Below are positions 2,901 to 59,466 of a stretch of 64,000 bases of DNA, in pieces. Position numbers and translations under genes: made by a program. This stretch comes from Chara braunii (Eukaryota; Plantae; Charophyceae): positions 3,328,676 through 3,392,675 of the forward strand of contig BFEA01000033.1 of assembly GCA_003427395.1 (NCBI GenBank), given 5' to 3'. Positions within the stretch are counted from its first letter, which is position 1; the number at the start of each line of letters is the position of its first letter. The notes beneath the pieces are model-generated. The model had not been told where the DNA came from and made no database searches. It saw only the letters and a program-made list of their open reading frames with translations.

Positions 2901-2925
2901 TCTGGACCTGATATAAACTCCGACA

Positions 2926-3001
2926 AAACAGTTTGTCACAGCCCCTCGTTTGTTGTCCTCTTCTCTCTCTCTGCCTACGGTTTACCGGGCAGTTCTATTT
3001 G
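2926..3001 (+). repeat. 76-bp dispersed repeat, second copy at 59375-59450 downstream of the Penelope-like ORF
   Basis: Manual alignment gives 71/76 identity. Both copies contain the hairpin CTGCCTA(C/T)GGTTTACCGGGCAG and are followed by TA-rich sequence. Confidence 0.85.
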
Positions 3002-3204
3002 TGACGATATATATTATATATCATACTTGCGGCGCACCGGCACTGTGCGCTGCGCAGTGCGCTGTGTGCGGACCCAGGGTGTGCGCACAGCGGCAGTGCC
3101 GCGCATCTGGTTCGCAGTGCGCGCTGCGCTGCACACGTCTGGTGTGCTGCGCGCATGTGCGCAATGTATATTTTCATGTTCTAGCGGTAGATTCATTTGA
3201 TTTT

Positions 3205-7269: not shown

Positions 7270-8970
7270 GTGTTTACCGGAAGGGGGTTGTTGATGGGCG
7301 CAACAACGGCCGCTGGTTACCTGAACTCTTTCAATTTATATCATGACAATTGTTTGAAGTTCTCCATTGCGCTAAATCGGTTCATATCTTGACTTTGTGT
7401 GAACTCTCGTGAGAAAATTCTGTCTGTGCATGCTTAGTTTGGGGTTGAGTAAAGGGAGGTTCATTGCACACGTAATGTGTCCAAGCCAGTCCTAGCTTTC
7501 ACGTGTTTGGAATGACACTTAACTTATCATCGTTCATCGAGAAGACGATATCACCAAGTTGCAGCATTCCCCTCAAAAAGTCGCCTTTGATCAGTAGTTA
7601 TTTTCCCTTGTAAATCTTGACATCCCTATTTCTCTGACCTTGTGGCTCCTGAAATTATGCGTCAAACAAATCTTTCGTTGTATTTATTCAAAGATCACCT
7701 CATTTGATGTGTCCCCTGTCAAATGCAGCAAAGTAGTTTTTTTTTCTACTCAGCTTTTTCATTTGTGAAGTCTTTTCAAGCGTTGTTAAATTCCTCTTTC
7801 AACGAGCCCTTACTTGCCCAATTTTATCTCGCAAATGACAAGATAATGAACAATCAATGTCCATGAGTTACCTTGCTGATGTCACTTCACAATTTTCTGT
7901 AACGGTGAGAATCCTGCGAAATTAGCATCTAAACAGTGAATAGGGTTGCTTTTTCCTTCCCTGCCACTCCACTCTTTATAATGCCTTTCTTTCAAACTTC
8001 TTGAACTTAATCAATTTCTAATGAAGACATTTCCGAAAGTTCCTCCGTTCCACATTATTCTCCCTCCTCGCTAAAACTTCGTCTTTTAGGACAACCTCCC
8101 TGTTTTCTAATCCTCTGAATCCCAGATCCAGTGCCAAGTTCATCATTAGATATGTGTTTTGTGCTGCACCTGCTATGTTAGGAATCTTCACTCTCTTCCG
8201 AACTAGCCACTTGCTTGAACGGACCACCTTTGATCCCTTTTCTACCCCATGGCCCCCTAATCTTGCTCCTAGGCTGGTCAAATCGCGCAACAAGTGAAGG
8301 TTGCCATACTCGTATCTGTTTATCAACTCATGGCGATATTCCACAAGCAGTCGAACAGGACATCGCCACCTCAACGGCTGCCATGGCCACTGCCTCCACC
8401 GTTGCTTCCATTTGAACAGTGTGATGTGGTTCTCTTGAACTTTCTGAAACACATTGACCGAGTGATCACCATTATGTAAAATATCATGGCGATACTCCAC
8501 TGAGCTGCCACAATATCATGATGGAATAATCTCCATCATGATAGTCACAGTGTGGGCATGCACACACGAATAGTCACACGATGGACTTAGGTACTCAGTG
8601 CCCATGCATAGTCACCGTGATGAAGTACATAGGAAGAGTCAATGAACCAATCACCATGACACAAGAGTCATTGTTATGCACCAGTGCACCACTCAATCAC
8701 TGCGACCCATGTTTAGTTTCACTGATGAACGTACTGGCTGTGCTGCCATAGGCACCGTCACGGCATAGGCATACTGTGGTGTGATGGCTTATCGGGGCAA
8801 TTGACTGAGGCGTAATGACCTTCAAGACAGTGTGCAGGCCCAGGAGCATAGATAGCGCAGGCCGGGTGGTAGTGTTCCCAACACCCAGCAGGGAAAACTC
8901 TCAGGTAGGTCTTGCTATTGCAAGGCCCGTTTCTGACTTTTCACGGTGGTAGAGATGTCTTCGGATTCCG

Positions 8971-8971
<1 letters not shown>

Positions 8972-9011
<40 letters not shown>

Positions 9012-9872
9012 CAATTACTGCAGTGTCTTTGCTCGGAGAGGTGATAAGAGCACCCCCTCCTAGCAAGAGTGGGTGCTCTGGTCTATTGGTGGGGAGCCGC
9101 ACCTGCTGGCATACGGGTCCAGCCTCCCATTGTACATCTGACAGCCTGCCAGCATTAATTGCCCTGTTTCCAGGGGATTAACTGTGCAGGGTTAATGATA
9201 AGTATGTTGGACAACAGTACATTTCAGGGCGCCGCCTCTTCACTCTGCGCCAGACCACCAGATCACTCATGTTTTCCTAGCAGCAACTTCCTACTTTCTC
9301 TGAATACCCGCCGATACCTTCCGTGTCCTGTTTGTAGACCCGCTTCTTCCTTACTTGGTCCCATTGGCATGTGGTCTTGCCTGTGATCTTGCTCACTCTG
9401 CTCCATACCATTGCATATTGACCATTGCCAGCTGGTGGGGTGGGAAGGGGTCGGGAAATTCTGTGGATGGTCGCAACAGGATCTCCTGGCCCACCTTAGT
9501 CCAGTCTCTGGAGCAAATACGGTAGTCTCCCCTGAATTCCTCCTGGTTACATTTCTGGGTGGGCCTGCCATCCCATCGGACAGATGAGATCCAGCCCCCG
9601 TTCTCACTGCCCAACCAGTCCCCAGAGAATTGATGAATTGCTTGTGTTATGTCCTTTAGCGAATGAAACTGCTCGAAGAGGTGGGCGCTACCCTGGTGTA
9701 AATCGTGCCACACCGTCTTCCCCCCCCCCACAGAATTCCGGAATCCATAGAGCTGTTGCATACCGTATAGGTGCAGTCCAGAACAAGAACCGACCTTTCA
9801 ATACAAAGTATAAGATAGCACAGCGGAAGACTTAGATACCAATGATCCGAACAATCAATATTGCAATGCAGC
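8972..9872 (-). mobile_element. Non-LTR (L1-like) 3' end with poly(A) tail
   Basis: T40 at 8972-9011 on +. The adjacent motif TCTATTGGTGGGGAG..GCACCTGC...CGGGTCC recurs after another poly-T at ~43920-44060. Decayed minus-strand ORF 9393-9761. Confidence 0.5.
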
Positions 9873-11039
9873 NNNNNNNNNNNNNNNNNNNNNNNNNNNN
9901 NNNNNNNNNNNNNNNNNNNNNNNNNNNNNNNNNNNNNNNNNNNNNNNNNNNNNNNNNNNNNNNNNNNNNNNNNNNNNNNNNNNNNNNNNNNNNNNNNNNN
10001 NNNNNNNNNNNNNNNNNNNNNNNNNNNNNNNNNNNNNNNNNNNNNNNNNNNNNNNNNNNNNNNNNNNNNNNNNNNNNNNNNNNNNNNNNNNNNNNNNNNN
10101 NNNNNNNNNNNNNNNNNNNNNNNNNNNNNNNNNNNNNNNNNNNNNNNNNNNNNNNNNNNNNNNNNNNNNNNNNNNNNNNNNNNNNNNNNNNNNNNNNNNN
10201 NNNNNNNNNNNNNNNNNNNNNNNNNNNNNNNNNNNNNNNNNNNNNNNNNNNNNNNNNNNNNNNNNNNNNNNNNNNNNNNNNNNNNNNNNNNNNNNNNNNN
10301 NNNNNNNNNNNNNNNNNNNNNNNNNNNNNNNNNNNNNNNNNNNNNNNNNNNNNNNNNNNNNNNNNNNNNNNNNNNNNNNNNNNNNNNNNNNNNNNNNNNN
10401 NNNNNNNNNNNNNNNNNNNNNNNNNNNNGACTACAGCTAGCGCTACTACTACTGCCTAGCGCNGAAGACTACTGCAGCGCTCCTCCTGAGTGCTGCGGCC
10501 GAAATCTGAAGACTACCGTCCTACTCTCCAACTGCCTACCCGTTCAGTGCCTGAAGATCCTATGTACTATCACGGGTGCCTCCTGACTCGGGCGAGCAGT
10601 CCAGGAGGCTGCTCTTGCCAATAATGCCGAAGGGAGGCAGTGGCTGCAGCTGCAGCTCCTGCTCGTGCTAATGCCAATAATGCTGCAGGGAGGCAGGGGC
10701 TGCAGCTGCAGCTCCTGCTCGAGCTGGCGTGGGAACAGGCCAGAAATAGCCTGTTCCGAAACCCAGTTTTCGTGCCTGAATCTTAGGGCAGGTTGAAACA
10801 AATGAGGGCCTAAAAATAGCCCAGGGCCTAAGAATAGCCCTCCGTTTCAGGCTGGAAAAACTCTGGGTCTGAAAGACCCAGAAATAGGCTGAAACGGAGT
10901 AGGGCCTGCAGGCCCTCGTTTTTCAGTTTTCAGNCTGAAACGACCGGGGCCTGTAGCTCCTAAGTTTTAGGCTTTAAGGCTGAATGTCCGGGACGGGTCC
11001 TACAGGGCCTGTGTGGCTACGCAGTCTGCCACAATATAT

Positions 11040-11469: not shown

Positions 11470-12240
11470 CTCAGTTCCTACATTCAAATGAGACCTCCAT
11501 CAAGCCTTCACAGTTTCTTTTATGTTCACCTTTGGTTAAGTAGCCTTCACCGTTAAGGTATACAACTTTAGATTCTCCCCCGACCTGCGTTTTCGCGTAG
11601 GCCTCGGGGTCAAAGGGGAGCTCTGCCACGGGGATATTTGGCTTGTATGCGATCAACGCATCTTTGTCCCGCAGCACGCGGATCCTGTGCAGGTTCGCAT
11701 TTCTTTACCATCATCACCTTTGGGGTGTACCGAGTGAGCACATTATACTTGCCTATGTGGAAGAGGTTAACCAGCGTTTCGTGCGTTCGTGCCTCCACCA
11801 CATTGTCTACATTTCCGGATCACCCGGGGCCACTACCCAGTCTCCTTCTACCAGTCGTGGCCCTTTGCGCAAGATGCGCATCCAGTCCAGGGGGATAGCA
11901 AAGATCAACGATTCGATGTGCTCCTCAACATTGTGGTAATGCTTTAGTATAGTCCTCAGTTGCTGCGCAGTTTTCCAGTCTCCCTTCCCTGTATCCCATA
12001 TATCCTTTATTATGGTTATACCTTTTTTGACCCAGCTGTTCCATGGGGCGCTTGAGCTGCAATACACCCTGCTGTACCGGTCCGTAATCCTCCTGTTCCC
12101 AAAAAGGGGTTGACGCATCACCTCCTCCCTCCTAGTCGGTGGGGGTTTGTCAGGCAGCGGAAGTTGGCACAGGCCTTTCAAAACACGGGCCCAGAAGTCG
12201 TCCCTGACCGAATCCAAGCGGATTGCGTCTCGGCACGAAA
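11470..12240 (-). mobile_element. L1/Tx1-clade LINE ORF2 post-RT fragment
   Basis: FWARVLKG..QPLFGNRRI..WVKKGITIIKDIWD..LIFAIPLDW are typical L1 ORF2 C-terminal motifs. Confidence 0.7.
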
Positions 12241-12467
12241 CTAGGATTCCACTTTTGAATACTTCAAGTCCCTGATATCCAGCTCAATTAGGAGCAATCC
12301 AGTGTCAAGACACCTGGTGACAGGAGAGACTCGTAGCCTTTGTTTCCTCCCAGGATGGTCCTAGGGTACCCCTCTTCACCTTCCTTAGTGGCTTTGCTTT
12401 TGACACGTGCCTGTACCATAAGGCGCACCTTCCAGATTACACTGGCGCCCACCTCTAATCATGCAAC

Positions 12468-13823
12468 TGTAATGACCCGCACAGTTTTCAGTCTGAGCTA
12501 CCTTCATTTTTCTGAGAAAATTTCTTGCATTGATATGTTTGCTGAGCTAGTCCGAGTCTGCTTTTCTGTATTTTCTGTGTCTGTGTGACCTTGTGATGAT
12601 GTTTGTATGCCCGTGTGCTTGCCTGTTTGCGTGGTTCACTGTGATTTCCTAGTTTGTCTGTTTTGCTATGTTGGCTGTGTGACTGGGATTAATACTGTTC
12701 TTTTGCTGGTTTTTTTTTCGAGTCCCGGCAAGGGTAGAATGGAAATAGGTAGAATTGCAGGGTTGGTACTGGAATTGGACACTGGATTTGAAAGGCCAGG
12801 ACGGATAAGGACAAAACGTAGAATTTGGGAAGCACCCCGAGGGGCTGCGGTTCCAGTAACTCGGGTAGGCCCAAGTGAAGTCTGGTAGGCTTAGGAAGGT
12901 CTGGTAGCTTCCAAAAGAGGTCATTGGTGTTCAGGCGTTCATCTAACTAGCTTTCAGGTTAGATACAGGCCCAGTATTTGGATTGCAGACTGCAATGATG
13001 TTCAAGCGTAAGAACAGGCATTTCCATAGGCTCAGTGCCTCGGAAGAGCCAGTAGAACCCGGCCAAGAGAGGCTGGAGGCTGGGTAAACAAGAGCATACT
13101 ATTCGGCAGCAATGAGAGAGCACACACATTACCTGGCAGTCATGCTGCTGCTCCGCACAGAAGGTGAAGTTAGGTGAAGCTCTGGCTGAGCGGTGGAGCT
13201 GGAGGGTAAAGGAGAAGACCTCCATGGCTACGGAGGAGGGGAGGGGAGGGTGAAGGACCTCAAGCTTGGTCATGGTGAAGGGTGGAGGAAGAGAGTTGAG
13301 GGAGAGGGACAGGAAGAAGTAAGGAATGTACATGGGAGACTTACCTATGGCTATGTTAGATGTTCATCTCCACCTTGGTTGGTGCTGCATCAAGAAGCCC
13401 CCTGTGTGGTACCGGCTGGTCTTGGGCTGCATCCGAGAGTGTGGCTATCGCGATATAACATGGGAAAGGCACAGTAGTGGTTGTATTGCCTTTTGAACAT
13501 CTGTGGTGGACATGGATCACCTGCGATAGCTAGATATGTGACGGAGAGGAGCAGAGTACAATGAGGCTGAAAGAGAGCTCTTTTACGTGCTGGAAGTAAG
13601 GGGGAACACTCGGACATGACTCCTGGTCATTCACTCATTTGTTGTTTGCATTGATTGGTTATTTGAAGAGGTGGAGGAAGGGAGAAGAAGATGAGAGGGG
13701 GGTTTTCGTCTTCTATCCTCATCATTCTATTCCACTCCTCTCTTTCTGCTTCTTCTTGACTGCAGCACGTCGTGCATTTCCTCACATATGAGTTTGCATT
13801 ATGGGCGATGAGCGATCATAACA
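12468..13823 (+). mobile_element. Solo LTR of the Gypsy lineage seen at 27788-38378 and 60.5-64 kb
   Basis: Starts TGTAATGACCCGC and ends GATCATAACA. Flanked by CAAC on both sides (4-bp TSD). Internal CAGACTGCAATGATGTTC is the reverse complement of ~28483-28500. Confidence 0.7.
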
Positions 13824-15128
13824 CAACCAAAGCTCTCCCTAATGCAATCCATCTTTTTTCTGGACTTCTCTGTTTCCGTCCTTAGTAGTGATTTGCTTAG
13901 TAATTCCAACTGGAGGGTCGACTCTTTCAACATTCTCCCTCTTCTTGTCTACATCTATTATTTTCCTCCTCCGGGGCCTCCCTAAATTGATTTTGTTTTT
14001 CCCTGCTTCTCCCTTGTCTGTCTTGCTGAGCAACTTTCTCAAAGACATCACCGCTTCACCATCATTGAGCTACCTACTACCCATAACCTGCATTGATATC
14101 CCTATACTACTAAAGGAAACAGCGGTCCTCGCGTGGGTCCCAACAGAAACCGGGTGGCGCCGCGCGGGACCGGTTACGGGCAGCGGGTAAGGGGGAACCG
14201 GTGGAACTCAGGGTGAGGGGCGAATCCCAGCACGCGCGAGCAGAAGAGGAGTTGGTCCAGCTGCGGACGAACCGGGTTGTCTGCTGCTCACGTGGAGCGG
14301 GATTTGTCGGGATGTCGAGGATTGAGACGGGTGGGGCCCGAAGCGAGGCTGAAGTGACGTGACGGGCGGGGCGAGGCGGGAAGTGGCATGGCATGAATTG
14401 GCTACCGGCAAGGCGACGGGCGGGGCAGCGCCCTTTCGTGCGGGGGGGGGCGGGCGGGGGAGAGAGAGAGAGAGAGAGAGAGAGAGNNNNNNNNNNNNNN
14501 NNNNNNNNNNNNNNNNNNNNNNNNNNNNNNNNNNNNNNNNNNNNNNNNNNNNNNNNNNNNNNNNNNNNNNNNNNNNNNNNNNNNNNNNNNNNNNNNNNNN
14601 NNNNNNNNNNNNNNNNNNNNNNNNNNNNNNNNNNNNNNNNNNNNNNNNNNNNNNNNNNNNNNNNNNNNNNNNNNNNNNNNNNNNNNNNNNNNNNNNNNNN
14701 NNNNNNNNNNNNNNNNNNNNNNNNNNNNNNNNNNNNNNNNNNNNNNNNNNNNNNNNNNNNNNNNNNNNNNNNNNNNNNNNNNNNNNNNNNNNNNNNNNNN
14801 NNNNNNNNNNNNNNNNNNNNNNNNNNNNNNNNNNNNNNNNNNNNNNNNNNNNNNNNNNNNNNNNNNNNNNNNNNNNNNNNNNNNNNNNNNNNNNNNNNNN
14901 NNNNNNNNNNNNNNNNNNNNNNNNNNNNNNNNNNNNNNNNNNNNNNNNNNNNNNNNNNNNNNNNNNNNNNNNNNNNNNNNNNNNNNNNNNNNNNNNNNNN
15001 NNNNNNNNNNNNNNNNNNNNNTTTTTGTGTGTGTGTGTGGGTGTGGGTGTGTGTGTGAGAGAGAGAGAGAGTTTTCCAGCCATGCACGCGGAGAGATAGA
15101 GAGAGGCTACTTCCATCGATAGGATGAA

Positions 15129-16136: not shown

Positions 16137-19100
16137 TCAGTCCAAGGCAGGACCTTTACCTTTCCTATCTCTCTCATAGGCTCGAACTATATCGGGAGCA
16201 GCCTCTAGAAGTTCTGTTCGTGTGAACCGGCGGTCATCCTCGGGTTCCTGAAAAGAGAATCTAACTTTATATTGTTTCTGCGGACGACCTCTACCTCCCG
16301 TTTTGAAGACATCTTCATCTACTATGCCGTCAATGTCGTACCTTCCATCCATGTCCGGAGGGATCATGGATCTTCGTGATGGAAACTGTTGACTTGTGGT
16401 GCAAGGCAACAACTTTGAGGCATGAAAAACTGGGTAGGTGTGGAGGTGCACTGGAATCTCTATTGTGTAGGACGGTCCATCCTCTCCGCCCTTAACTTCT
16501 AGAACTGGCCACGGTCCTCTGTAAGCAGGCAACAATTTTTGTGAGATGTTCTCCTCAAGAACAAACTCTTTTGACTTGACCAAGACTAAGTCGCCTACCT
16601 GAAACTGTGACGGGCGACGGTGCTTATTGGCCTGTTCTATCATCTTATGCTGGGCTTTCCTGAGGTTGTCTACAACGGTAGCTATCTCTTTCTCATGCTG
16701 TATTGCGAACTCCCTAGTACCGGGCGGTAGCCTCCGGATCTGATCCCGGTTCAGTCCTTCAAACGGTCTACGCGGCCTAAAGGACTTGTGTAACTCGTTG
16801 GGAGTGCGGCATGTCGCTCTATGCAGAGTGCGGCAGGTTGCTCTATGCTTGCTATTGTTGTATGCGCTGGCTACCTTTGGGAGCATCTCATCCCAATTGA
16901 CTTGATCAGGTCTAATATACATTCTCAGAACTTGCTGCAGGATCGTTTTCATCTGTTCAGTCTGACCGTTAGTCTCTAGATGACGATCAGATGACATCAA
17001 TAATCTAGAGCCATAGACTCTCATCAACTCCTGCCAGTTTTGACTAGTGAACTGGTTATCTCTATCACTAACTATAGACAACGGTAACCCGTGATCACTG
17101 ACCCAATGGTCGAAGAACTTTTGTATTACTAAATTTGTACGTGCCTCTGAAGACAAGGGAACAAAAACTGCATACTTGCTAAATCTATCCACTATAACCA
17201 TGGCTTGGCTCTTGCCATGCCTACTCTTGACTCCTGCATCCATAAAGTTGATGGACACAGAATCTTCGGGCCCATCGGGAATAGGCAGGGGTCTGAGAAG
17301 ACCAAGAGGGTCTCGCGTAGTGGTCTTATTTCGCTGGCACACCTTACAACTGCGTACATACTCTATGCAGTCAGCCTTCATACCAGGCCACGTATACGCA
17401 TGCATAAGGTTGGCTAATGTCTTCTGCCAACCGAAGTGTCCCTCTGTGTCGTGACATTCCCCTAGGATCAAACTACGGATTTCCTCGTTGTTGGGGACGC
17501 ACAGACGGTCAGCTACGTTAGTCTTCTCGAATAGTAACCCATCGGTAGTGCGGTAATCTGGTTCTGTCCTTGGGGCCTCCTTCACTCTCTTGAGGAGGTC
17601 ACTATAGATAGGGTCCTGTTCATATGCCTCTTTAACTTTTTGCTGCAGATAGTGTACTAGAGGGTCCACTACTACATTCTATTTTCCATTTACAGGCTTG
17701 AGCTCAAAGTCGAACTGGTCTATTTATGCGGCCCACCTAGTAAGCTTAGGTGTCATCTTGGCTTGTGTCTTCAACCACCTCAGCGTCTCGTGGTCTGAAT
17801 ACACTTTGAAGTGCCTCCCAAGCAAGTAGTGCTTCCAGTGGTCTAATGCTTGCCTGAGAGTGTAGAGTTCCCTCTCATAGGTTGATGTTGCTACCTTCTC
17901 TGAAGGCATCCTAGCAGACATGAACTCTACGGGTCTATACCCATTGCCATCGTCTTGTTGTAAAACAGTGCCTATGTCGTACTGATTGGCGTCAGTAGTA
18001 ACAACGAAAGGAAGGGATAGATCGGCTACCTTGAGGATTATGTACTCTATCAAAGCCCGCTTCAACTTCTTCAGGGCTGATGTACAATCTTTGTCCCACT
18101 TCCATATCGCCTCTTTCTTTAGCAATCTACGAAGGGGTGTAGCGACGGTAGAAAAGTTCCTAACGAACTTTCTAAAGTAATTTTCCAACCCTAGGAACGA
18201 CCGCAACTCTGTCAGCGTGTGGGGAGTCAGCCAGTCTCTAATTGCTGCGATTTTACTGTCCTCAGGCTTTATGCCATCTCCATCTAAGGCGTGGCCCAAG
18301 TACAGGACTTGCGTCTTGGCCCACTCGCACTTCTTCGCGTTGATCTTGAAGTTATCTTCCCTCAACTTCTCCAAGACCTGCCTCAGATGGCCCTCATACT
18401 CGTGGAGGGTCTTACTAAAGACTAAAATATCATCTAGATATACGACTACGAACCTATCTAAAGAAGGCCTAAATAAATCATTCATACAGCGTTGAAAGGT
18501 AGTTGGGGCATTGGTTAGTCCAAAAGGCATTCCTATAAACTCGTAGTGCGCGTATCTAGTTCTAAACACCGTCTTCTGCTGATCATCAGGATAGACCTGT
18601 ATCTGATGATAGCCTGACTTCAAGTCTATCTTTGAAAAGTATTTGAAGCCCTGCACACGATCTAGCAGATTATCTATACGGGGCAGTGGTTCTTCATTCT
18701 TCACTGTGATGGTGTTAAGACCTCTATAGTCAATACACACACGAAGCTCTCCCTCCTTTTTGAGGGCAAAAAGAACAGGTGCTCCAAATGGAGATGACCT
18801 GAGCCCAATCCAACCCTTTTCGAGGGGCTCGTCTAGCTGCTTGTGTAGCTCTTCTAACTCTCGTGGGGACATTCTATAGACGGCCCCCTTAAGAGTCCTA
18901 CTGCCAGGCTCTATCTCGATGCGATGTTGGATTGGCTGCAACACTACACCTATAGGCGGCTCAGACAAGTCTGCGTACTCCTCCAACAACTTGACAATAG
19001 TTGGGTTAGTGGGTTCCTCTTCCTTAGGCTCAGTAACAGGCCATACATAGGCTACAAAGACCTGTTCCTCTAATTGCTCCTTCACTAATCGCGTGAACGC

Positions 19101-19574
19101 GGGAGCACTGAGGCAGCAATGTGCCAGAGAATTATCTACTCCTGACACATGGAACAAGTGGGTTGTCTTCTCTTCGCCTGATGGACTAGGGAGCCTACAC
19201 TGATGCTCTCTTAAATGGAGTGTGGCCCCTGCTGCCTCTCCCCAATCCATTCCCAAAACTATGTCGAATTGGAGACTGTCTTCTACGAGGAGAGTCAAGG
19301 AATGAAGGACTTTCTCTACCTTCCCATTCGTCTCTAGGCGAAAGTACGCCTGGACTCCCTCGACATAGTCTTCGATTCGCGTAGTGCGATTGTCTGCGAG
19401 GATGCTAACTATAGGGTCAACTAACTTTTGGACTTTCAAATTAAGCTTCAGCTTCTGTAGAGCCTTCTTGCTAATATAGCTGCGGGTGGCCCCACTATCT
19501 ATAAGGGCCCCTACTCTACCTTTGAAAATCTCTACATCTACCAAAACTAGTTGTCCTTTCGCATCTTTCTTCAT
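16137..19574 (-). pseudogene. pol: Gypsy pol: protease, RT, RNase H, integrase, chromodomain; two in-frame stops between RNase H and integrase
   Basis: ALIDSGAT, KIDLKSGYHQI, MPFGLTNAP, YLDD, TTDA, HDTEGHFG..CKVC, IVSDRD, GPWPV..PVFHASKL, chromodomain YDIDGIVD..YKVRF. The linker reads RWAA*IDQFDFELKPVNGK*NVVVDPL. Confidence 0.95.
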
Positions 19575-19835
19575 TTGGCCCAGACAGGCATTCTTTCCTT
19601 CAACTCTTCTGCCACGCCTGTGAGGGAACTGCCTAGAGAGACTCTAACACAAGCAGTCTCTGGACAGAGCTGTCTAGGCATTGGCCAGCAACCTCTGTCG
19701 TAGACACATCTGTTTTGGGAGTTTCTTTGTGGTGTCTCTCTTCTCCACATGGTCTAGGGGTAGGGGCAGTTGCAACCCCTACCGGCGGTTGCCTTTTGCT
19801 GCCTGTGCAGCAAACCAGACTTCTTTATATTTAGG

Positions 19836-21791
19836 GCAATATTGTATGATGTGCCCAGGATCACCGCAATAGATGCATTGATCCTGGTCTATTCGCCTCT
19901 GCCGCACTGTTTGTTCGAAGCCCACTGATTCCCGGGGCCGACCCTCAGGCCGACCAAGGTGCCATCCACCCGACGTGGGAGGTGACCGACTAGAGCGACG
20001 ACGGTTTGACGGGGGACCTTGACCCCGTCCTCCTGCTTGGCGGTTTCCCCTCTCGCCAACCCCCTGGCCGCTTTGCCCTCGACCACCAGAGGCCTGGCCC
20101 CTTTGGCCTTGGCCCCTTCCTTTCCCTTGCGGCTCCCTCCGACCGCGACAGCAGCATAGGTCCTCCCTTGGCCAGTGCCGCTATCTTCCTCATCAAGGCC
20201 CCGCTCAAGCTCACTATACGGGACCTCTTCTAGACCACCCTCATCTAATGTAAGAATAAGGCTATCTTTAGCCTTGACCTGACTGGTGATGGTGTGGCCT
20301 TTCCACTTTTTCCCTTTGGCGAGGTCCTTATGCCAGAAAGTGGTAACTGGCATGGACCGAGCCTCGAAGGCAACAACCTCCCTACTTAGCGTATCATACG
20401 TCATGTTGGGTTGCTGCTTTCTATCAAAGAAATGCCCATGCAACTTCTCGGGCATAGTGCGGTAAAATAATTGGACCAGTTGGGGCTCAATGACCCCATG
20501 GCCAGGAACGGCAACAAGCTCATCCATGGCGGTCTTCATCGCCCTAGCACTCTTCCACTGTCTCGTGTGGACAGTTTGCAACTTGTCAGAAGCCCTGAGG
20601 CCCCTAGTGACATCTGTGAAACGCTCTCGCAGGGCGCTGAGGAATTCACTGAGGGGGGTAAGGATGGAGTATGTGACCATATCGTTTTCGCATTTGGCAG
20701 CGAGGGCTAACGATCTGGCAAAATTGGTTGCTTCATCTTTAAGGCCATGAAAGGCGACAAGGACCTGGTCCTCGGGCGCAATATTCTGAAGATGCACATA
20801 GGAGTTCACATTCGCCTCCCAGTTGTCAAAATCCTCTCCAGCTTTCCCACTATAGTGATCAGGAAACTTGACCTTTACGCGCTTTCTACGTGGCCGGGCC
20901 TCTTCTTCTTTGGGGCCCACTATTCTTGGCACCTTCAATGGCGCCCATGCAAAACTTCTGCTCCATAATTGTGTGTGATTCGGTGCCTACATACATCATC
21001 ATATCCTTTGCAAAATCTTTAAAACCGGTGCGCATAGATTGCAGCGTAATAGAGTGGCCCTTTAAATAGCGCAACTGTTCTTGCTGCGCCTTCAGCATTA
21101 CCTCTACACTCTGTGATAGGATCTCCACCTTCCTTTGGAGATCGATTTGCGCTGCCAACTTCCCATGTTCTACTTCCGCTGCCCTCGAATCCTCCTCCAC
21201 TTTCTCGGCCGCCTCCAATCTTCTTTTCCTCTTGCGGGCAAGGTGGAGTTTCCACTCTAACTTTTTATCCTCCTCCATCGCCTGTCGCTTCATGGGATTC
21301 TCTTCACCCTCCAATTCCCTAGCAAACTGTTCCCACTCTGCCTGAGGGGCAAACAACAATGCTTCGTCCTCCTCCCCCAAGGCCAATTTGGCTACCCACT
21401 CGTTCACCAACCTCTCCATCTTAGCGTCTGCCTCCATCTGGGCTTCTGTCTCCCGCGCTCCACTGGATTCCCCTCTCTCTTCTGTTCTTCCTCTCCTTTC
21501 CAGTGGTACCTCTACTTCTTCTTCTGTCTCTGACTCTATTGCTGCCAATTTCTCCTCGTGTTCCTTTTTCCACTTTTGAAACTCCTCCATTTGCTTCTGC
21601 TTGGCCTTTTGCTCCTCCATCATGGCCAGCATCTTTGCCTGTTTAATAAGCTCCCCGTTCTCCATCTTCTCCTTCTTCTCTCTCAGGATGGCGGCGACTT
21701 TCTCTTCTTGCTCTTTGGTGTACGGGGTGGTGCTCTTACCGCTGCGCAGGACAACCATGGTGTCAGATATACAACCGAGTGACAGTTCCAC
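19836..21791 (-). pseudogene. gag: Gypsy gag (coiled-coil N-terminus, capsid, CCHC knuckle), frameshifted
   Basis: ORFs 20886-21791 and 19889-20938 (KFPDHYSGKAGEDFDNW). Knuckle CIYCGDPGHIIQYC at 19836-19877 lies in another frame. Confidence 0.9.
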
Positions 21792-54825: not shown

Positions 54826-56808
54826 GGCCCCAGTCAACTTGAGACTCTGCTACTCAGAGTCAGCAGTCTTGAGACAGCAGACGTTCGAGAACTCGAATGC
54901 CTCATCCGAAAATCGCAGCATACCGGCCAACGTTACACAGCACAACCTCGTGACCCATTTACTGACCACATCAAGGTCGTACATGCACATGAGGTAGCTC
55001 GTGCTACAAACTTGCGCCATGTGTTACAATTGTCGGATGTAGTTGCATTGCACCCGGATCCTCAAGCAGCCACACATGTTCGTGTGTGTGACAAACTGAT
55101 GCCACCCACGCGTGTCCAATTTTGTAACTTCATTGATGTGGCCTTGAGTGTTACTCTTGGCATGACCTTACCCGACTCCTCTGATTGCAAATGTCGCAGA
55201 GCGTTTCCACATTGTTCTGATCTTGTGGATGACCATATTGTGTCTGTTGATTACAATATCATCTCCGATGATAGCCTTCGCAAGCTTTTTTAAGAAGGCT
55301 CGAAGTATCGGCTGAATGGGGAAACTGCCGATGTGCTCCAGGCACTGGCAATTGGACTAGATGAGTACATTGCCAATTACAAAAGGTTGTTGGCCGGACA
55401 TTCTCGATCTGCTTCTTTCTCGTATCTCAGAAGTTGAACAACTAGCGTTCTACAATCCTTGCGCATTGCCAATCCAATGCATCTCCGTTCTCCAATCATG
55501 TGAGCCAGCCACGTTCACTACGTTCTACACATGCCTCCTTGCACCATCTTCAACAACACTTTGCCATTGTCCCTGTGGACAAAACATCACACAATTTGGC
55601 AATTTCCTGCAAGAATTGGTATTTGTTTCATCTCTCTCCTCATTTGGACAGTCCCACTTATACTGTCTTCAAGAGTCTGTTGCTGATGTCCTTGACCACC
55701 ATGCAGTGTGGAATCACCATTGGGGTTGCACCCACACTAATACCCTACCTTACCTTTACTATGTACTCAAAGCTCACAAGTCTCCTCCATCTCTTCGCAA
55801 CATTCTTGGAGTCACAGCACAAAATAACAGTGTTGTTCCCCCGCGTGCTCGCCCTCGTCCAACAATTCGCACCATTCATGAACGGCCTCCTCACAAACCC
55901 TTGGCTAGCACGACGACTACTTCATCGTATCTCAGCGCCGCTTTGCAAGGAGTGATCTCTACTCTTCGCGAGAAAGACACTGAGCTGAGCTCTATCAACA
56001 TGTTGGTGTTCGACGGTGCTGGATCGTTCAGAGTGTCGATGAAGTGGCGATTGACCTGAAAAACAATGCATTGTCTCTTCGTGGCCTCTCTCCTCGAACT
56101 ATTGATTTTACCACAATGTACACCAACCTTCTTCATGACCGTATTCTGAATAATGTGGCAAAAGTTGTTGATGAAGCTCATGCTTATGCCCTTCGGCAAG
56201 CTCGCATGCATTCACGCTGCGTCCTCAACATGGTTATTTGAGGACCTCGTTGTGGCCAATGGACAACTGATTCGGGCCTGGATACCCTTTCTGTTTCTCA
56301 GATTCTCCAACATCTTTGCTTTGTTGTACAAAACACTTTTTTATACACGAGAGATGGCACACTTCGGAAACAAATTATCGGTATTCCAATGGGAACGAAT
56401 GCTGGTCCATAAATTTCTAATCTGACGCTGTATTGGGATGAAGCACGCTTTGTTGATGACATCCGTCAACATGATCTTCAAGCTGCTCAACAATATGCCT
56501 TCACCTATCGCCTCATTGATGATGTTCTTTCATGGGGACAATTACCTCCTTCACCAGAGCACTATGGGCTTGAGTGGAAGGAGACTACAGTTACGGATGG
56601 CTCCTGTACCTTTTTAGGTATGCATCTACAGGTCCGTTCCGATGGCTCGTTTCGCATGAGCGTCTTTGATAAAGCGGCTGCTTGGGACTTCCCTGTCATT
56701 CGTTATCCAAGTGCGACCTCCAACATCCCTTCCCATCAACCGGTTGGTGTGTTTACTGGCCAATTGACCAGATTTGAACAAATCTGTAACAATTGGCAGG
56801 ACTTTTGA
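54826..56808 (+). pseudogene. Penelope-like reverse transcriptase (frameshifts and stops)
   Basis: LRKLF*EGSKYR; FAIVPVDKTSHNLAISCK; LPYLYYVLKAHKSP; CWIVQS; TIDFTTMYTNLLH (D at 56104); KQIIGIPMGTNAGP (G at 56380); YRLIDD (56506-56523); CTFLGM; VFDK..WDFPVIRYP..GVFTGQLTRF. Confidence 0.9.
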
Positions 56809-57000
56809 ACTGCAGCAACAACACTTCCTTGTTGTATGACCTACTACATGCGCTCCCGCCAACGTCGCTATCTTACGCATGTGATGCATCTCTCTAAGCG
56901 GTTCCGACGCATGATGCGATGGTCCTTGTATCATCCAATTTCTTCTTCCCCCCCACGATGCTCTCGTCCTGCCCCTGCTTACTCATCTGCTGCTACCGCA

Positions 57001-57261
57001 GTTTTCACTGCTGCAGTCTCCACTCCTGCAGTTTCCATTGCTGCAGTCTCCACTCCTGGAGTTTCCATTGCTGCAGTGTCCACTGTTGCGGTTTCCACTG
57101 CTGTAGTTTCCACCGCTGCAGTGTCCACTGTTGCGGGTTCCACTGCTGTAGTGTCTACTGCTGCAGTTTCCATTGCTCTAGTTTCTACTGCTCCAGTTTC
57201 CGCTGCTGCAGTTTCTACTGTTGCGGTTTCCACTGCTGCAGTTTTCAGTACAGCAGTTTCC
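57001..57261 (+). repeat. 15-bp coding minisatellite (GTTTCCACTGCTGCA)n encoding (AVSTA)n
   Basis: About 17 imperfect units inside ORF 56836-57576, in frame with the RT thumb. Confidence 0.9.
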
Positions 57262-58025
57262 CTAACTGTAATTCCCCCTACTTTGGTTTTTACTGCTACA
57301 ACTTCCTGTCCTGCAGCTCCAATGCAAAGAACATCACAATCTCTCCGACGCTCACGTCCTTTGGTCCGAAATCTTGCCCAATGCAACCCCCTCTCATCTT
57401 TGTCTGTGCTTGGCCGTAGACGACTGCGTTCCTCCTCACCACCCCCATCTCCTCCACGGTCTCGCTTGCGAACAGACTCTCCAGTTTCCATTGTTCCTAT
57501 TGTTCCACCTGCGTTGCTAGGTACAAGTTCAGCTTCTGTTTGCAACACCACTACTCCTCTTGTTGTGTATCACTGACGACATCCACGGCATCGTCACTTG
57601 TTCGGGGATCAGCAACCTGTTTCTTTGTCTGCCCCGATTCTCTTTGTGCCTCCTCCACAGGTTGTTGCGGTTCCTTTGTTTCAAAAGGCAATATCCGCTC
57701 CTATGCCTCCTGCAGACAGTCCAGCTGCCTGCAGGCAGCCACCAGTCCCTACTCAGGATGCAGCCGCTGCCCAGAGTACACTCCCGACTCCAGGTACAGT
57801 CCCTACTCAGGATGCAGCCCTAAACGTTGAGGGATTGGAACATGATCTGCCCGGATTGCAGTTGACCCCACAAGGCGTAGACCACATGGGGGATCTGCAA
57901 ATGGCTGACCAGCATTGTTCGGATGAACCACAATTTTGTGCTCCGCCATGGGTGTGATCTGCCCGGATTGCAGTTGACCCCACAAGGCGTAGACCACGTG
58001 CAGACCACATGGGTGTGATCTGCAA

Positions 58026-59006
58026 ATGACTGACCAACAAACAACCCAACATAGTTTGGGCTTGCAACACCATCTGGGTGATCTGCAAATTGTTGGCCAG
58101 CATCCAACAAACCAGCCTGAGAACCTCACCAATCTTTGTGGTCTGACAACAACTAATATCTGTCTTCACATTCTCCATCTCCCATTTTATACACCATCAG
58201 ACTTCCTTGCAATCAACCTTCAGCTTGATGCTGATCTTCCCCGACGACAGCCAGAGGATTGTAATTATACCAGCGAAGGAGGCTTTACCATTGCTGTCCT
58301 ACAAGTAGCAATGAGGGACCGTCAACTTGAACTACGCAATGCTCGAGCAGGTGAGTGGTTTAATCCTCCATCCCACATCTCTACCCGCATTGTGCACGGC
58401 CCTGGCCATTACATGGCAATTGTACATGCCTCTGAGCACTGGGAGCTGTGGGACAACAGCACCATGGTCCATGCCATGATTGATGTCACTGATTTCTTAC
58501 AAAATGATGCTGTTCTCTTGCCACAACAAACCGTCCACAATCTCTTTTATGTTGAAGATCATTCCTCTGGCCCCGTGCTGCAGAAAAACAATGTACCAAC
58601 ACTCTGCGACCTTCTCCTTTACACAGCCACAAACACTGTTACACTCGGCTGTAGCCGCCATCGTCTCTGTCACGGTCACTACAATGACATGGTTTCTGCA
58701 TCCATGTGTGCAGAGGACTGTCCCACCGTTCCTGACTGCAGGCAAAATCCGCATCCGGACACTATATGTCCATTTTGCGGCCATGGGCACTATACTGAAT
58801 GCATGCTCTTTTGTGGTGACCGTTCTTTTTTCATTTTGGCCTTTAATCGACATGCCATTTGTCGGGGGTGTATGATGGGCATGCTCAATGCCACCCGTCG
58901 TGGCAATTGTTGCATTGAGCATGCTCAGATAGGTCTTCCATGTGTTCATCCACGTCATCCTTACAATGTATGTCCTCTCTGTTGTCAAGGACAGACTCAT
59001 TCTTGA
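58026..59006 (+). CDS. Josephin-like cysteine protease (deubiquitinase fold) plus two RING-like zinc fingers; probable C-terminus of the retroelement polyprotein
   Basis: NLCG..FYTPSDFLAINLQLD..NYTSEGGFTIAVLQVAM..LEL..GHYMAI..WELWDNS..LFYV parallels ataxin-3 (SLCA..YFSPVELSSIAHQLD..NMDDSGFFSIQVISNAL..LEL..EHWFTV..WFNLNS..IFVV). Triad C38/H128/D143. Confidence 0.8.
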   Translation: MTDQQTTQHSLGLQHHLGDLQIVGQHPTNQPENLTNLCGLTTTNICLHILHLPFYTPSDFLAINLQLDADLPRRQPEDCNYTSEGGFTIAVLQVAMRDRQLELRNARAGEWFNPPSHISTRIVHGPGHYMAIVHASEHWELWDNSTMVHAMIDVTDFLQNDAVLLPQQTVHNLFYVEDHSSGPVLQKNNVPTLCDLLLYTATNTVTLGCSRHRLCHGHYNDMVSASMCAEDCPTVPDCRQNPHPDTICPFCGHGHYTECMLFCGDRSFFILAFNRHAICRGCMMGMLNATRRGNCCIEHAQIGLPCVHPRHPYNVCPLCCQGQTHS

Positions 59007-59466
59007 GCCTTTTCTTATCCTCTTTTGCCTTCATCTTCACTCCACACTCCATACTTGCCCTTCCTTTCCCTTTATCATTCTTTGTTTGTCTGCTCTCCAT
59101 CTCTCCTCCCTGTGTTTATCCCCTCCCCCTTCACTCTGCCTCTTTCTTACAGCGTACAAGTGGGCTGTTATGGCACACGGGGATGGGGGCAGCTCACGCT
59201 CAACTTCATCAACGTGGCGAGCCTTCTACGTGAGAGGCACCGTGAAAGAGGAGTCAACAGAAGAATGAGAAAAATGAATGGTTTCACTGTGCCCTTCATG
59301 TTTGTCTTGTTTTTTTTTTTTTTTTTTTTTTTTTTGCCGTTTGTTTCGTAAATTGCGCTCTTTTAGTTTTAACGAAACAGTTTGCCACAGCCCCTCGTTT
59401 GTTGTCCTCTTCTCCCTCTCTGCCTATGGTTTACCGGGCAGCTCTGTTTGACTATACATATATATT

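Follow-up and report, generated by a model that had tools for sequence, protein, structure and literature searches.

The stretch of Chara braunii DNA analyzed here is 64,000 nucleotides (nt) in length (assembly GCA_003427395.1, contig BFEA01000033.1, positions 3,328,676–3,392,675 of the forward strand) and is termed the window. It is a eukaryotic, repeat-rich sequence. Window positions 54873–59371 very probably represent a dead, 5′-truncated copy of a Chlamys-type Penelope-like retrotransposon of Chara, i.e. of the type published as Chlamys-1_cBra (Craig, Yushenova, Rodriguez and Arkhipova 2021; PMC8557442); the probability assigned to this reading is about 0.88. A second copy of the element was not found within the window. 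Copies at the C. braunii loci L001, L004, L006 and L007 and on the ENA contig L005 were used for comparison. The parts of the window copy are as follows:

54873–55434 (+), 5′-truncation point and the linker preceding the reverse transcriptase (RT), frame 1; 84% amino acid (aa) identity to the L006 open frame from residue 206
55413–56805 (+), RT region, broken; 75%–84% aa identity to L006 and 60%–80% to L004 and L007
56806–57597 (+), post-thumb stretch and low-complexity linker, with TGA at 56806 and 57574 and a 15-nt tandem array
57598–58025 (+), Pro/Gln-rich linker with a duplicated unit of ~112 nt, from repeat comparison and frame reading
58026–59006 (+), open reading frame (ORF) of 326 aa, from reading-frame translation
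58113–58559 (+), predicted Josephin-like papain-fold cysteine protease domain, from Pfam (PF02099), AlphaFold2 (AF2), Foldseek and conserved Cys and His
58602–59006 (+), C-terminal Cys/His-rich module in which a RING-like spacing occurs twice in tandem, from conserved Cys/His columns
59007–59371 (+), 3′ untranslated region (UTR) of the element including a run of 26 T at 59310–59335; 77%–85% nt identity to the 3′ ends of L001, L005, L006 and L007

Homology to the element starts at window position 54873, which corresponds to residue 206 of the L006 open frame, and the sequence 5′ of this position is unrelated. The endonuclease and some 200 further residues are therefore missing from the window copy. 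A preliminary description of this DNA, made from the sequence alone, joined the RT and the ORF into one element, and this part stands; its starting point at 54826, however, is merely the first codon after a stop codon, and fuller copies align from 54873. Homology to the 3′ ends of other copies stops at about 59371. The region at approximately 54880–54990 was considered as a decayed GIY-YIG endonuclease and was rejected, as the endonuclease of L006 and L007 lies ~200 residues further upstream in a part that is absent from the window.

The window copy is dead. This is due to at least five in-frame stop codons, at 55291, 56239 (TGA), 56410 (TAA), 56806 (TGA) and 57574 (TGA), and to five frame changes, which are near 55420, 55668 and 55975 with two more in the linker duplication. 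At the position of the stop at 55291, the protein P0010, in an exon derived from the L006 copy, has Q. In the duplication, positions 57843–57888 and 57955–58000 are 98% identical and the reading frame passes from 1 to 2 to 0. The same linker repeat is read in a single frame straight into the Josephin domain in the C. braunii protein P0002 (L001). The preliminary description had given the TGA codons at 56806 and 57574 exactly and had also recorded the duplication with its two frameshifts, which is real, but it missed three more stops and three more frame changes. The window copy is unable to make the polyprotein and only its last 326 codons are still open.

A 15-nt tandem array encoding AVSTA-type repeats is found at 56998–57261 of the window copy, and in the frame reading the repeat stretch extends over about 56953–57336. 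The repeats of the stretch linking RT to Josephin domain are unrelated between subfamilies, i.e. AVSTA-type 15-nt units in the window versus acidic units of ~19 aa in L004 (10001–10160). At the position of the repeat linker, the assemblies of L006 and L007 have gaps.

Upstream of the RT, the window displays a CxC motif, CKC, at 55186–55194 (CKC also in L006, CQC in L007) and a GxKY motif, GSKYR, at 55297–55311, both in frame 1. The DK motif is seen in VPVDK at 55569–55583 in frame 0. The residue after DK is T in the window and in L007 and S in L006, which matches the description of a Chlamys DK motif without a conserved third residue (PMC8557442). The RT1/2 motif KAHK follows at 55769–55780 in frame 2. 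The motifs from RT3(A) to the thumb are all in frame 1, and these are DFTTMYT at 56104–56124, GIPMG at 56380–56394, RLIDD at 56509–56523 and GVFTGQLTRF at 56746–56775. Every one of these RT motifs named in the preliminary description is exact in the sequence, and their order, as read by eye, is that expected for RTs of Penelope-like elements (PLEs). There are 92 residues between DFTTMYT (RT3(A)) and GIPMG (RT4(B)), a long stretch that may represent the insertion in the fingers domain. The endonuclease context comes from the fuller copies. Positions 7431–8462 of L007 show a match to GIY-YIG (PF01541) with an E-value of 7e-4 and 20.3 bits, which is under the cut-off of 22.6, and the core of this GIY-YIG-like block, as read, has no Cys. 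The C-terminal block of the endonuclease is present in L006.

The 326-aa ORF matches Josephin (PF02099) as the sole family in a Pfam scan, with an E-value of 0.018 and 15.3 bits. An AF2 model of the ORF, built from a nine-row alignment, has a mean predicted local distance difference test (pLDDT) value of 52.7, with values of 60–83 over residues 34–160. When the model is compared with the PDB by Foldseek, the top six matches are all Josephin structures, ataxin-3 (3o65, 2dos, 1yzb) and JOSD2 (6pgv), with E-values of 1.4e-5 to 1.3e-4, target template-modelling scores of 0.5–0.6 and 14%–19% identity. The next matches are C39 (leader-peptide) peptidases with E-values of about 1e-3. In its modelled structure the domain thus has the Josephin fold, as the preliminary description had proposed.

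The catalytic triad is intact in the window copy, with Cys38 (TGT, 58137), His128 (CAT, 58407) and Asp143 (GAC, 58452) at precisely the positions first noted. Wherever a row of the family alignment covers them, the Cys and His columns do not vary; at the third catalytic position the Chara copies have D or N, and P0006 has S then N. Position 6 of the Josephin profile is matched by the conserved Cys in three relatives. The distance from His to Asp in the window ORF is 15 residues, the same as that from His to Asn in ataxin-3. Neither the Josephin ORF nor its alignment, and neither P0003 nor P0006, gave a Josephin match in searches of PDB sequences, and the residue-level correspondence to ataxin-3 therefore rests on Pfam coordinates and on general knowledge of ataxin-3.

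A search of 1.84 billion representative proteins found seven relatives, and all named (closest) relatives are Chara braunii proteins. Four of the seven match Josephin when scanned, P0002 (17.4 bits), P0003 (25.2), P0005 (21.6) and P0006 (29.2), with E-values from 0.004 to 9.4e-7; P0006 alone passes the Josephin cut-off of 26. The Pfam scan shows no Josephin match in P0001, a C-terminal fragment, or in P0004 and P0007, which hold only stray fragments of 49–55 aa. A precomputed Pfam flag, PF26215, on a further protein, P0009, was not reproduced on rescan.

P0006 is from a Lake Viverone metagenome (L003, Logan SRR10607546, positions 3–1181). With 31% identity, it displays a Josephin part and a single RING-like block, and N-terminal of the Josephin part there are a long linker rich in Pro and a C2H2-like stretch, CPRC...H...H. 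No stop interrupts the frame through this linker up to the start of the contig, and P0006 is therefore the C-terminus of a larger protein. A scan of JGI metagenomes found no relatives.

The order of domains can be followed in the other C. braunii copies:

L004, RT at 8102–9537, acidic repeat linker, Josephin domain at 10466–10720, Cys/His-rich module at 11500–11832 and 3′UTR at 12487–12686, all in one orientation
L004, 5′-truncated copies of Josephin domain plus Cys/His-rich module at 12906–13973 and 15780–15287, tail-to-tail
L007, GIY-YIG at 7431–8462, CxC and GSKYR, open RT frame of 397 aa at 9134–10324, assembly gap, Cys/His-rich module at 12435–12902, 3′UTR
L006, one frame open between the C-terminal end of the endonuclease and RT motif B, followed by a gap and the 3′UTR; the order is compatible
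L001 and L005, 5′-truncated, with module and 3′UTR only

Copies of the RT other than that in the window are therefore also followed by the module. The polyprotein proposed in the preliminary description, RT, linker, Josephin and RING, holds as to order, which recurs in L004 and, across the gap, in L007, and with which L006 agrees; its RING label is weakly supported. From these sequences, the succession of RT and Josephin domain is not a chance juxtaposition. The ORF is present in many copies and these are often 5′-truncated, thus it does not have the character of a single-copy spliced host exon. Truncation points differ among the window, L001, L004 and L005 copies and the 3′ ends are stacked. 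The window copy is 58%–85% identical to the C. braunii copies fetched and may belong to another subfamily than Chlamys-1_cBra. Comparison of the module in the window and in L001 gives a dN/dS of 0.35 (bootstrap confidence interval 0.22–0.55), and with L005 it is 0.42 (0.26–0.66). These values indicate that the module is a constrained coding part of active lineages.

Several gene models of the C. braunii assembly GCA_003427395.1, annotated as DNA ligase, SpoU methylase, Maestro HEAT and separase, end in or include fragments of the element as exons. The models concerned are P0010 (L006), P0008 (L007), P0004 (Maestro HEAT) and P0007 (separase), and they span tens to hundreds of kb. By their sequences, P0004, P0007, P0008 and P0010 are annotation chimeras.

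The conserved Cys/His columns of the C-terminal module form two tandem blocks with a RING-like spacing, C-x2/4-C-x9/10-C-x2-H-x2-C-x2-C/H ... C-x2-C, and HPxHP..CPxC closes each block. Two of the conserved Cys are missing from the window copy. A profile match, to zf-RING_5, is seen in L004 (13380–13715) with an E-value of 3.9e-4 and 20.8 bits, which is under the cut-off of 27.9, and no RING profile match is seen in the four other copies scanned. AF2 confidence over the module is below 50 and is uninformative. The tandem RING-like reading of this motif is weakly supported; it is a lead and not a result.

The intact element is reported to encode one protein of ~1,800 aa. From the N-terminus, it would consist of a GIY-YIG endonuclease, a CxC linker, an RT with a long insertion between motifs A and B, a repeat-rich linker, the Josephin-like cysteine protease and the Cys/His-rich zinc-binding module. 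Spread would be by target-primed reverse transcription, and the 5′-truncated and stacked copies are proposed to result from this process. In active copies the Josephin domain may act as a deubiquitinase, and ubiquitin-dependent degradation of the element protein, its ribonucleoprotein or a host partner would thereby be prevented. A partner role in ubiquitin handling, or binding of protein or nucleic acid, is proposed for the Cys/His module. Self-processing of the polyprotein, protection of the ribonucleoprotein and removal of repressive ubiquitin marks, the three roles put forward in the preliminary description, are all hypothetical. A stronger proposal is that the C-terminal cassette is a functional ubiquitin-editing pair, i.e. 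a Josephin deubiquitinase with a RING-like ligase finger or two, which purifying selection maintains in Chlamys elements and which is present also outside Chara (P0006). This is speculative and is considered unlikely; if true, it would imply a broader and as yet undescribed set of retroelements able to manipulate ubiquitination in their hosts.

A different role for the protease would be that of a self-processing papain-like enzyme, which in the manner of viral polyproteins cuts the linker and frees the RT and the Cys/His module and is not a deubiquitinase. Long low-complexity linkers are present on both sides of the protease domain, C39 leader-peptide peptidases are among the Foldseek matches, and the oxyanion-hole Gln is not conserved, all of which would fit such a role. 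However the top fold and profile matches are to Josephin and not to C39, neither a Gly-Gly nor any other cleavage motif was identified, and to our knowledge all characterised Josephin proteins are deubiquitinases. Self-processing is thus a doubtful alternative. Deubiquitinase activity, given an intact copy, is judged to be slightly favored.

Several points weigh against assignment of the window copy to a Chlamys-type element with a Josephin domain. The Josephin score of the window ORF is less than the Pfam cut-off of 26 bits, and the Gln found at the oxyanion-hole position of ataxin-3 is variable in the family alignment. Pfam, NCBIfam, PADLOC and PDB sequences gave no RT profile match, or chance matches only, with window pieces and with the L004, L006 and L007 frames, and the AF2 model of the open L007 RT frame, with a mean pLDDT of 35, is unusable. 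With neither a profile nor a usable model to identify it, the assignment as a putative Penelope-like RT rests on motifs read by eye, on the GIY-YIG/CxC context and on the published paper. An uninterrupted frame from RT to Josephin domain is seen in no single copy, and the assemblies break in the repeat linker. Chlamys-1_cBra was compared by its published description.

The absence of an uninterrupted frame, together with the stacking of Chara copies at one another's 3′ ends and the module fragments in the host gene models P0004 and P0007, would also be expected if the RT and the Josephin/zinc-finger ORF were two repeats, or a repeat and a host gene, that came to adjoin through nested insertion. 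This is very improbable, as the same order, orientation and spacing are found in three copies (window, L004 and L007) that share no more than 40%–80% identity in protein, and 5′-truncated copies finish in the same 3′UTR. In addition, the matches in the host models are terminal fragments of 49–55 aa within annotation chimeras and the published consensus has one ORF (PMC8557442). Nor is much weight given to the 326-aa frame being a domesticated or independently expressed host gene that derives from the element. Stops riddle the rest of the copy, so that no other long stretch is open, and dN/dS is below 1; however active lineages of the element would be expected to diverge with such a value, two conserved Cys of the zinc module are absent from the window copy, the ATG falls inside the frameshifted duplication and sister copies are broken at other places. 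Both explanations are of very low probability.

The sequence that adjoins the 3′ end of the element belongs to a different repeat of ~95 nt, which in fuller copies is preceded by a hammerhead core and which ends in GTGACGATATATAT. Nine copies of this hammerhead-bearing repeat are found in L001, L004, L006 and L007, and it also occurs at window positions 2923–3019. The locations include:

Window 59372–59466 (+), 3′-terminal fragment comprising the 3′ half of the ribozyme core and the tail, ending in (TA)n; 88%–93% identity to the nine copies
L004, 14755–14810 (−), 14357–14418 (+), 7419–7509 and 7797–7892
L006, 30082–30177 (−)
L007, 13980–14072 (−)
L001, 9923–10002

A full ribozyme core (CUGAUGA...GAAAC) is present in L004 at 14755–14810 (−) and matches Hammerhead_3 with 39.8 bits and an E-value of 4e-7, which is under the gathering score. 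No Rfam hammerhead was found inside the element. A tail carrying the hammerhead and owned by the Josephin-bearing subfamily was considered and dropped, since the alignment shows stacked, separate 3′ fragments. The units and other 3′ fragments are stacked at (TA)n, as if Penelope-like elements bearing a hammerhead had inserted again and again into the tails of earlier copies.

Elsewhere in the window, the pol region of a Ty3/gypsy-type long terminal repeat retrotransposon is found on the minus strand at 16137–21791. Positions 17724–19571 display aspartyl protease, RVT_1 (E-value = 6e-38) and RNase H domains, and positions 16137–17666 an integrase zinc-binding domain, rve and a Tf2-type SH3 domain.

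[quoted passage not shown] The markers of the Naiad/Chlamys clade are an N-terminal GIY-YIG domain (without CCHH in Chlamys), CxC, GxKF/Y, DK(G) (DK in Chlamys), a fingers-domain insertion and tandem repeats, and insertions show 5′ truncation and complex tandem or inverted copies (PMC8557442). The element described here is similar in its Chara host, in CxC, GxKY and DK, in a long ORF with tandem repeats, in a Josephin-like motif followed by a Cys/His-rich motif, and in 5′ truncation with stacked or inverted copies; by way of the GIY-YIG-like block of the sister copy L007 it is probably also similar in an N-terminal GIY-YIG without in-core cysteines. No architectural difference is seen, and the window copy differs only in being truncated, i.e. 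without the endonuclease, and decayed. The architecture is thus already known, having been published in 2021 as Chlamys-1_cBra (PMC8557442), and the novelty of a Josephin domain in a Penelope-like element, which the preliminary description had implied, does not hold. As a discovery the finding is minor because the architecture is already in the literature. Added here are fold-level support for Josephin, evidence for purifying selection and a weakly supported tandem RING-like reading of the Cys/His motif. The published weak homology gains fold support, conserved catalytic residues and a signal of selection.

The Dualen/RandI non-LTR retrotransposons of green algae (Kojima and Fujiwara 2005, as cited in PMC8557442) carry a Josephin-like protease for which interference with protein degradation has been proposed. 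Compared by description, the two have in common a retroelement polyprotein with a Josephin-like cysteine protease. However Dualen is a long interspersed nuclear element (LINE) with apurinic/apyrimidinic (AP)-like and restriction-like endonucleases and RNase H, whereas the Chara element shows a GIY-YIG-like endonuclease, in sister copies, and Penelope-like RT motifs. No AP or restriction-like endonuclease match was seen in any Pfam scan, and the Chara element is thus not a member of Dualen/RandI. If true, a retroelement with a deubiquitinase beside a possible ligase would offer a manageable example of how a transposon interferes with protein turnover in its host, and the question of a retroelement deubiquitinase has already been posed by Dualen and Chlamys-1_cBra.

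With ataxin-3, JOSD1 and JOSD2 (peptidase family C86, PF02099) the Chara domain shares the predicted fold, the Cys...His...Asp/Asn order and the 15-residue spacing between His and Asp. It differs in its low identity (14%–19%), in having no ubiquitin-interacting motifs and no conserved oxyanion Gln, and in its fusion to an RT and zinc fingers. The Ulp1-like proteases of the NeSL/Utopia non-LTR elements are likewise retroelement-borne proteases of ubiquitin-like modifiers, but these are of family C48, are N-terminal and are found in LINEs with a restriction-like endonuclease (PMC4640811).

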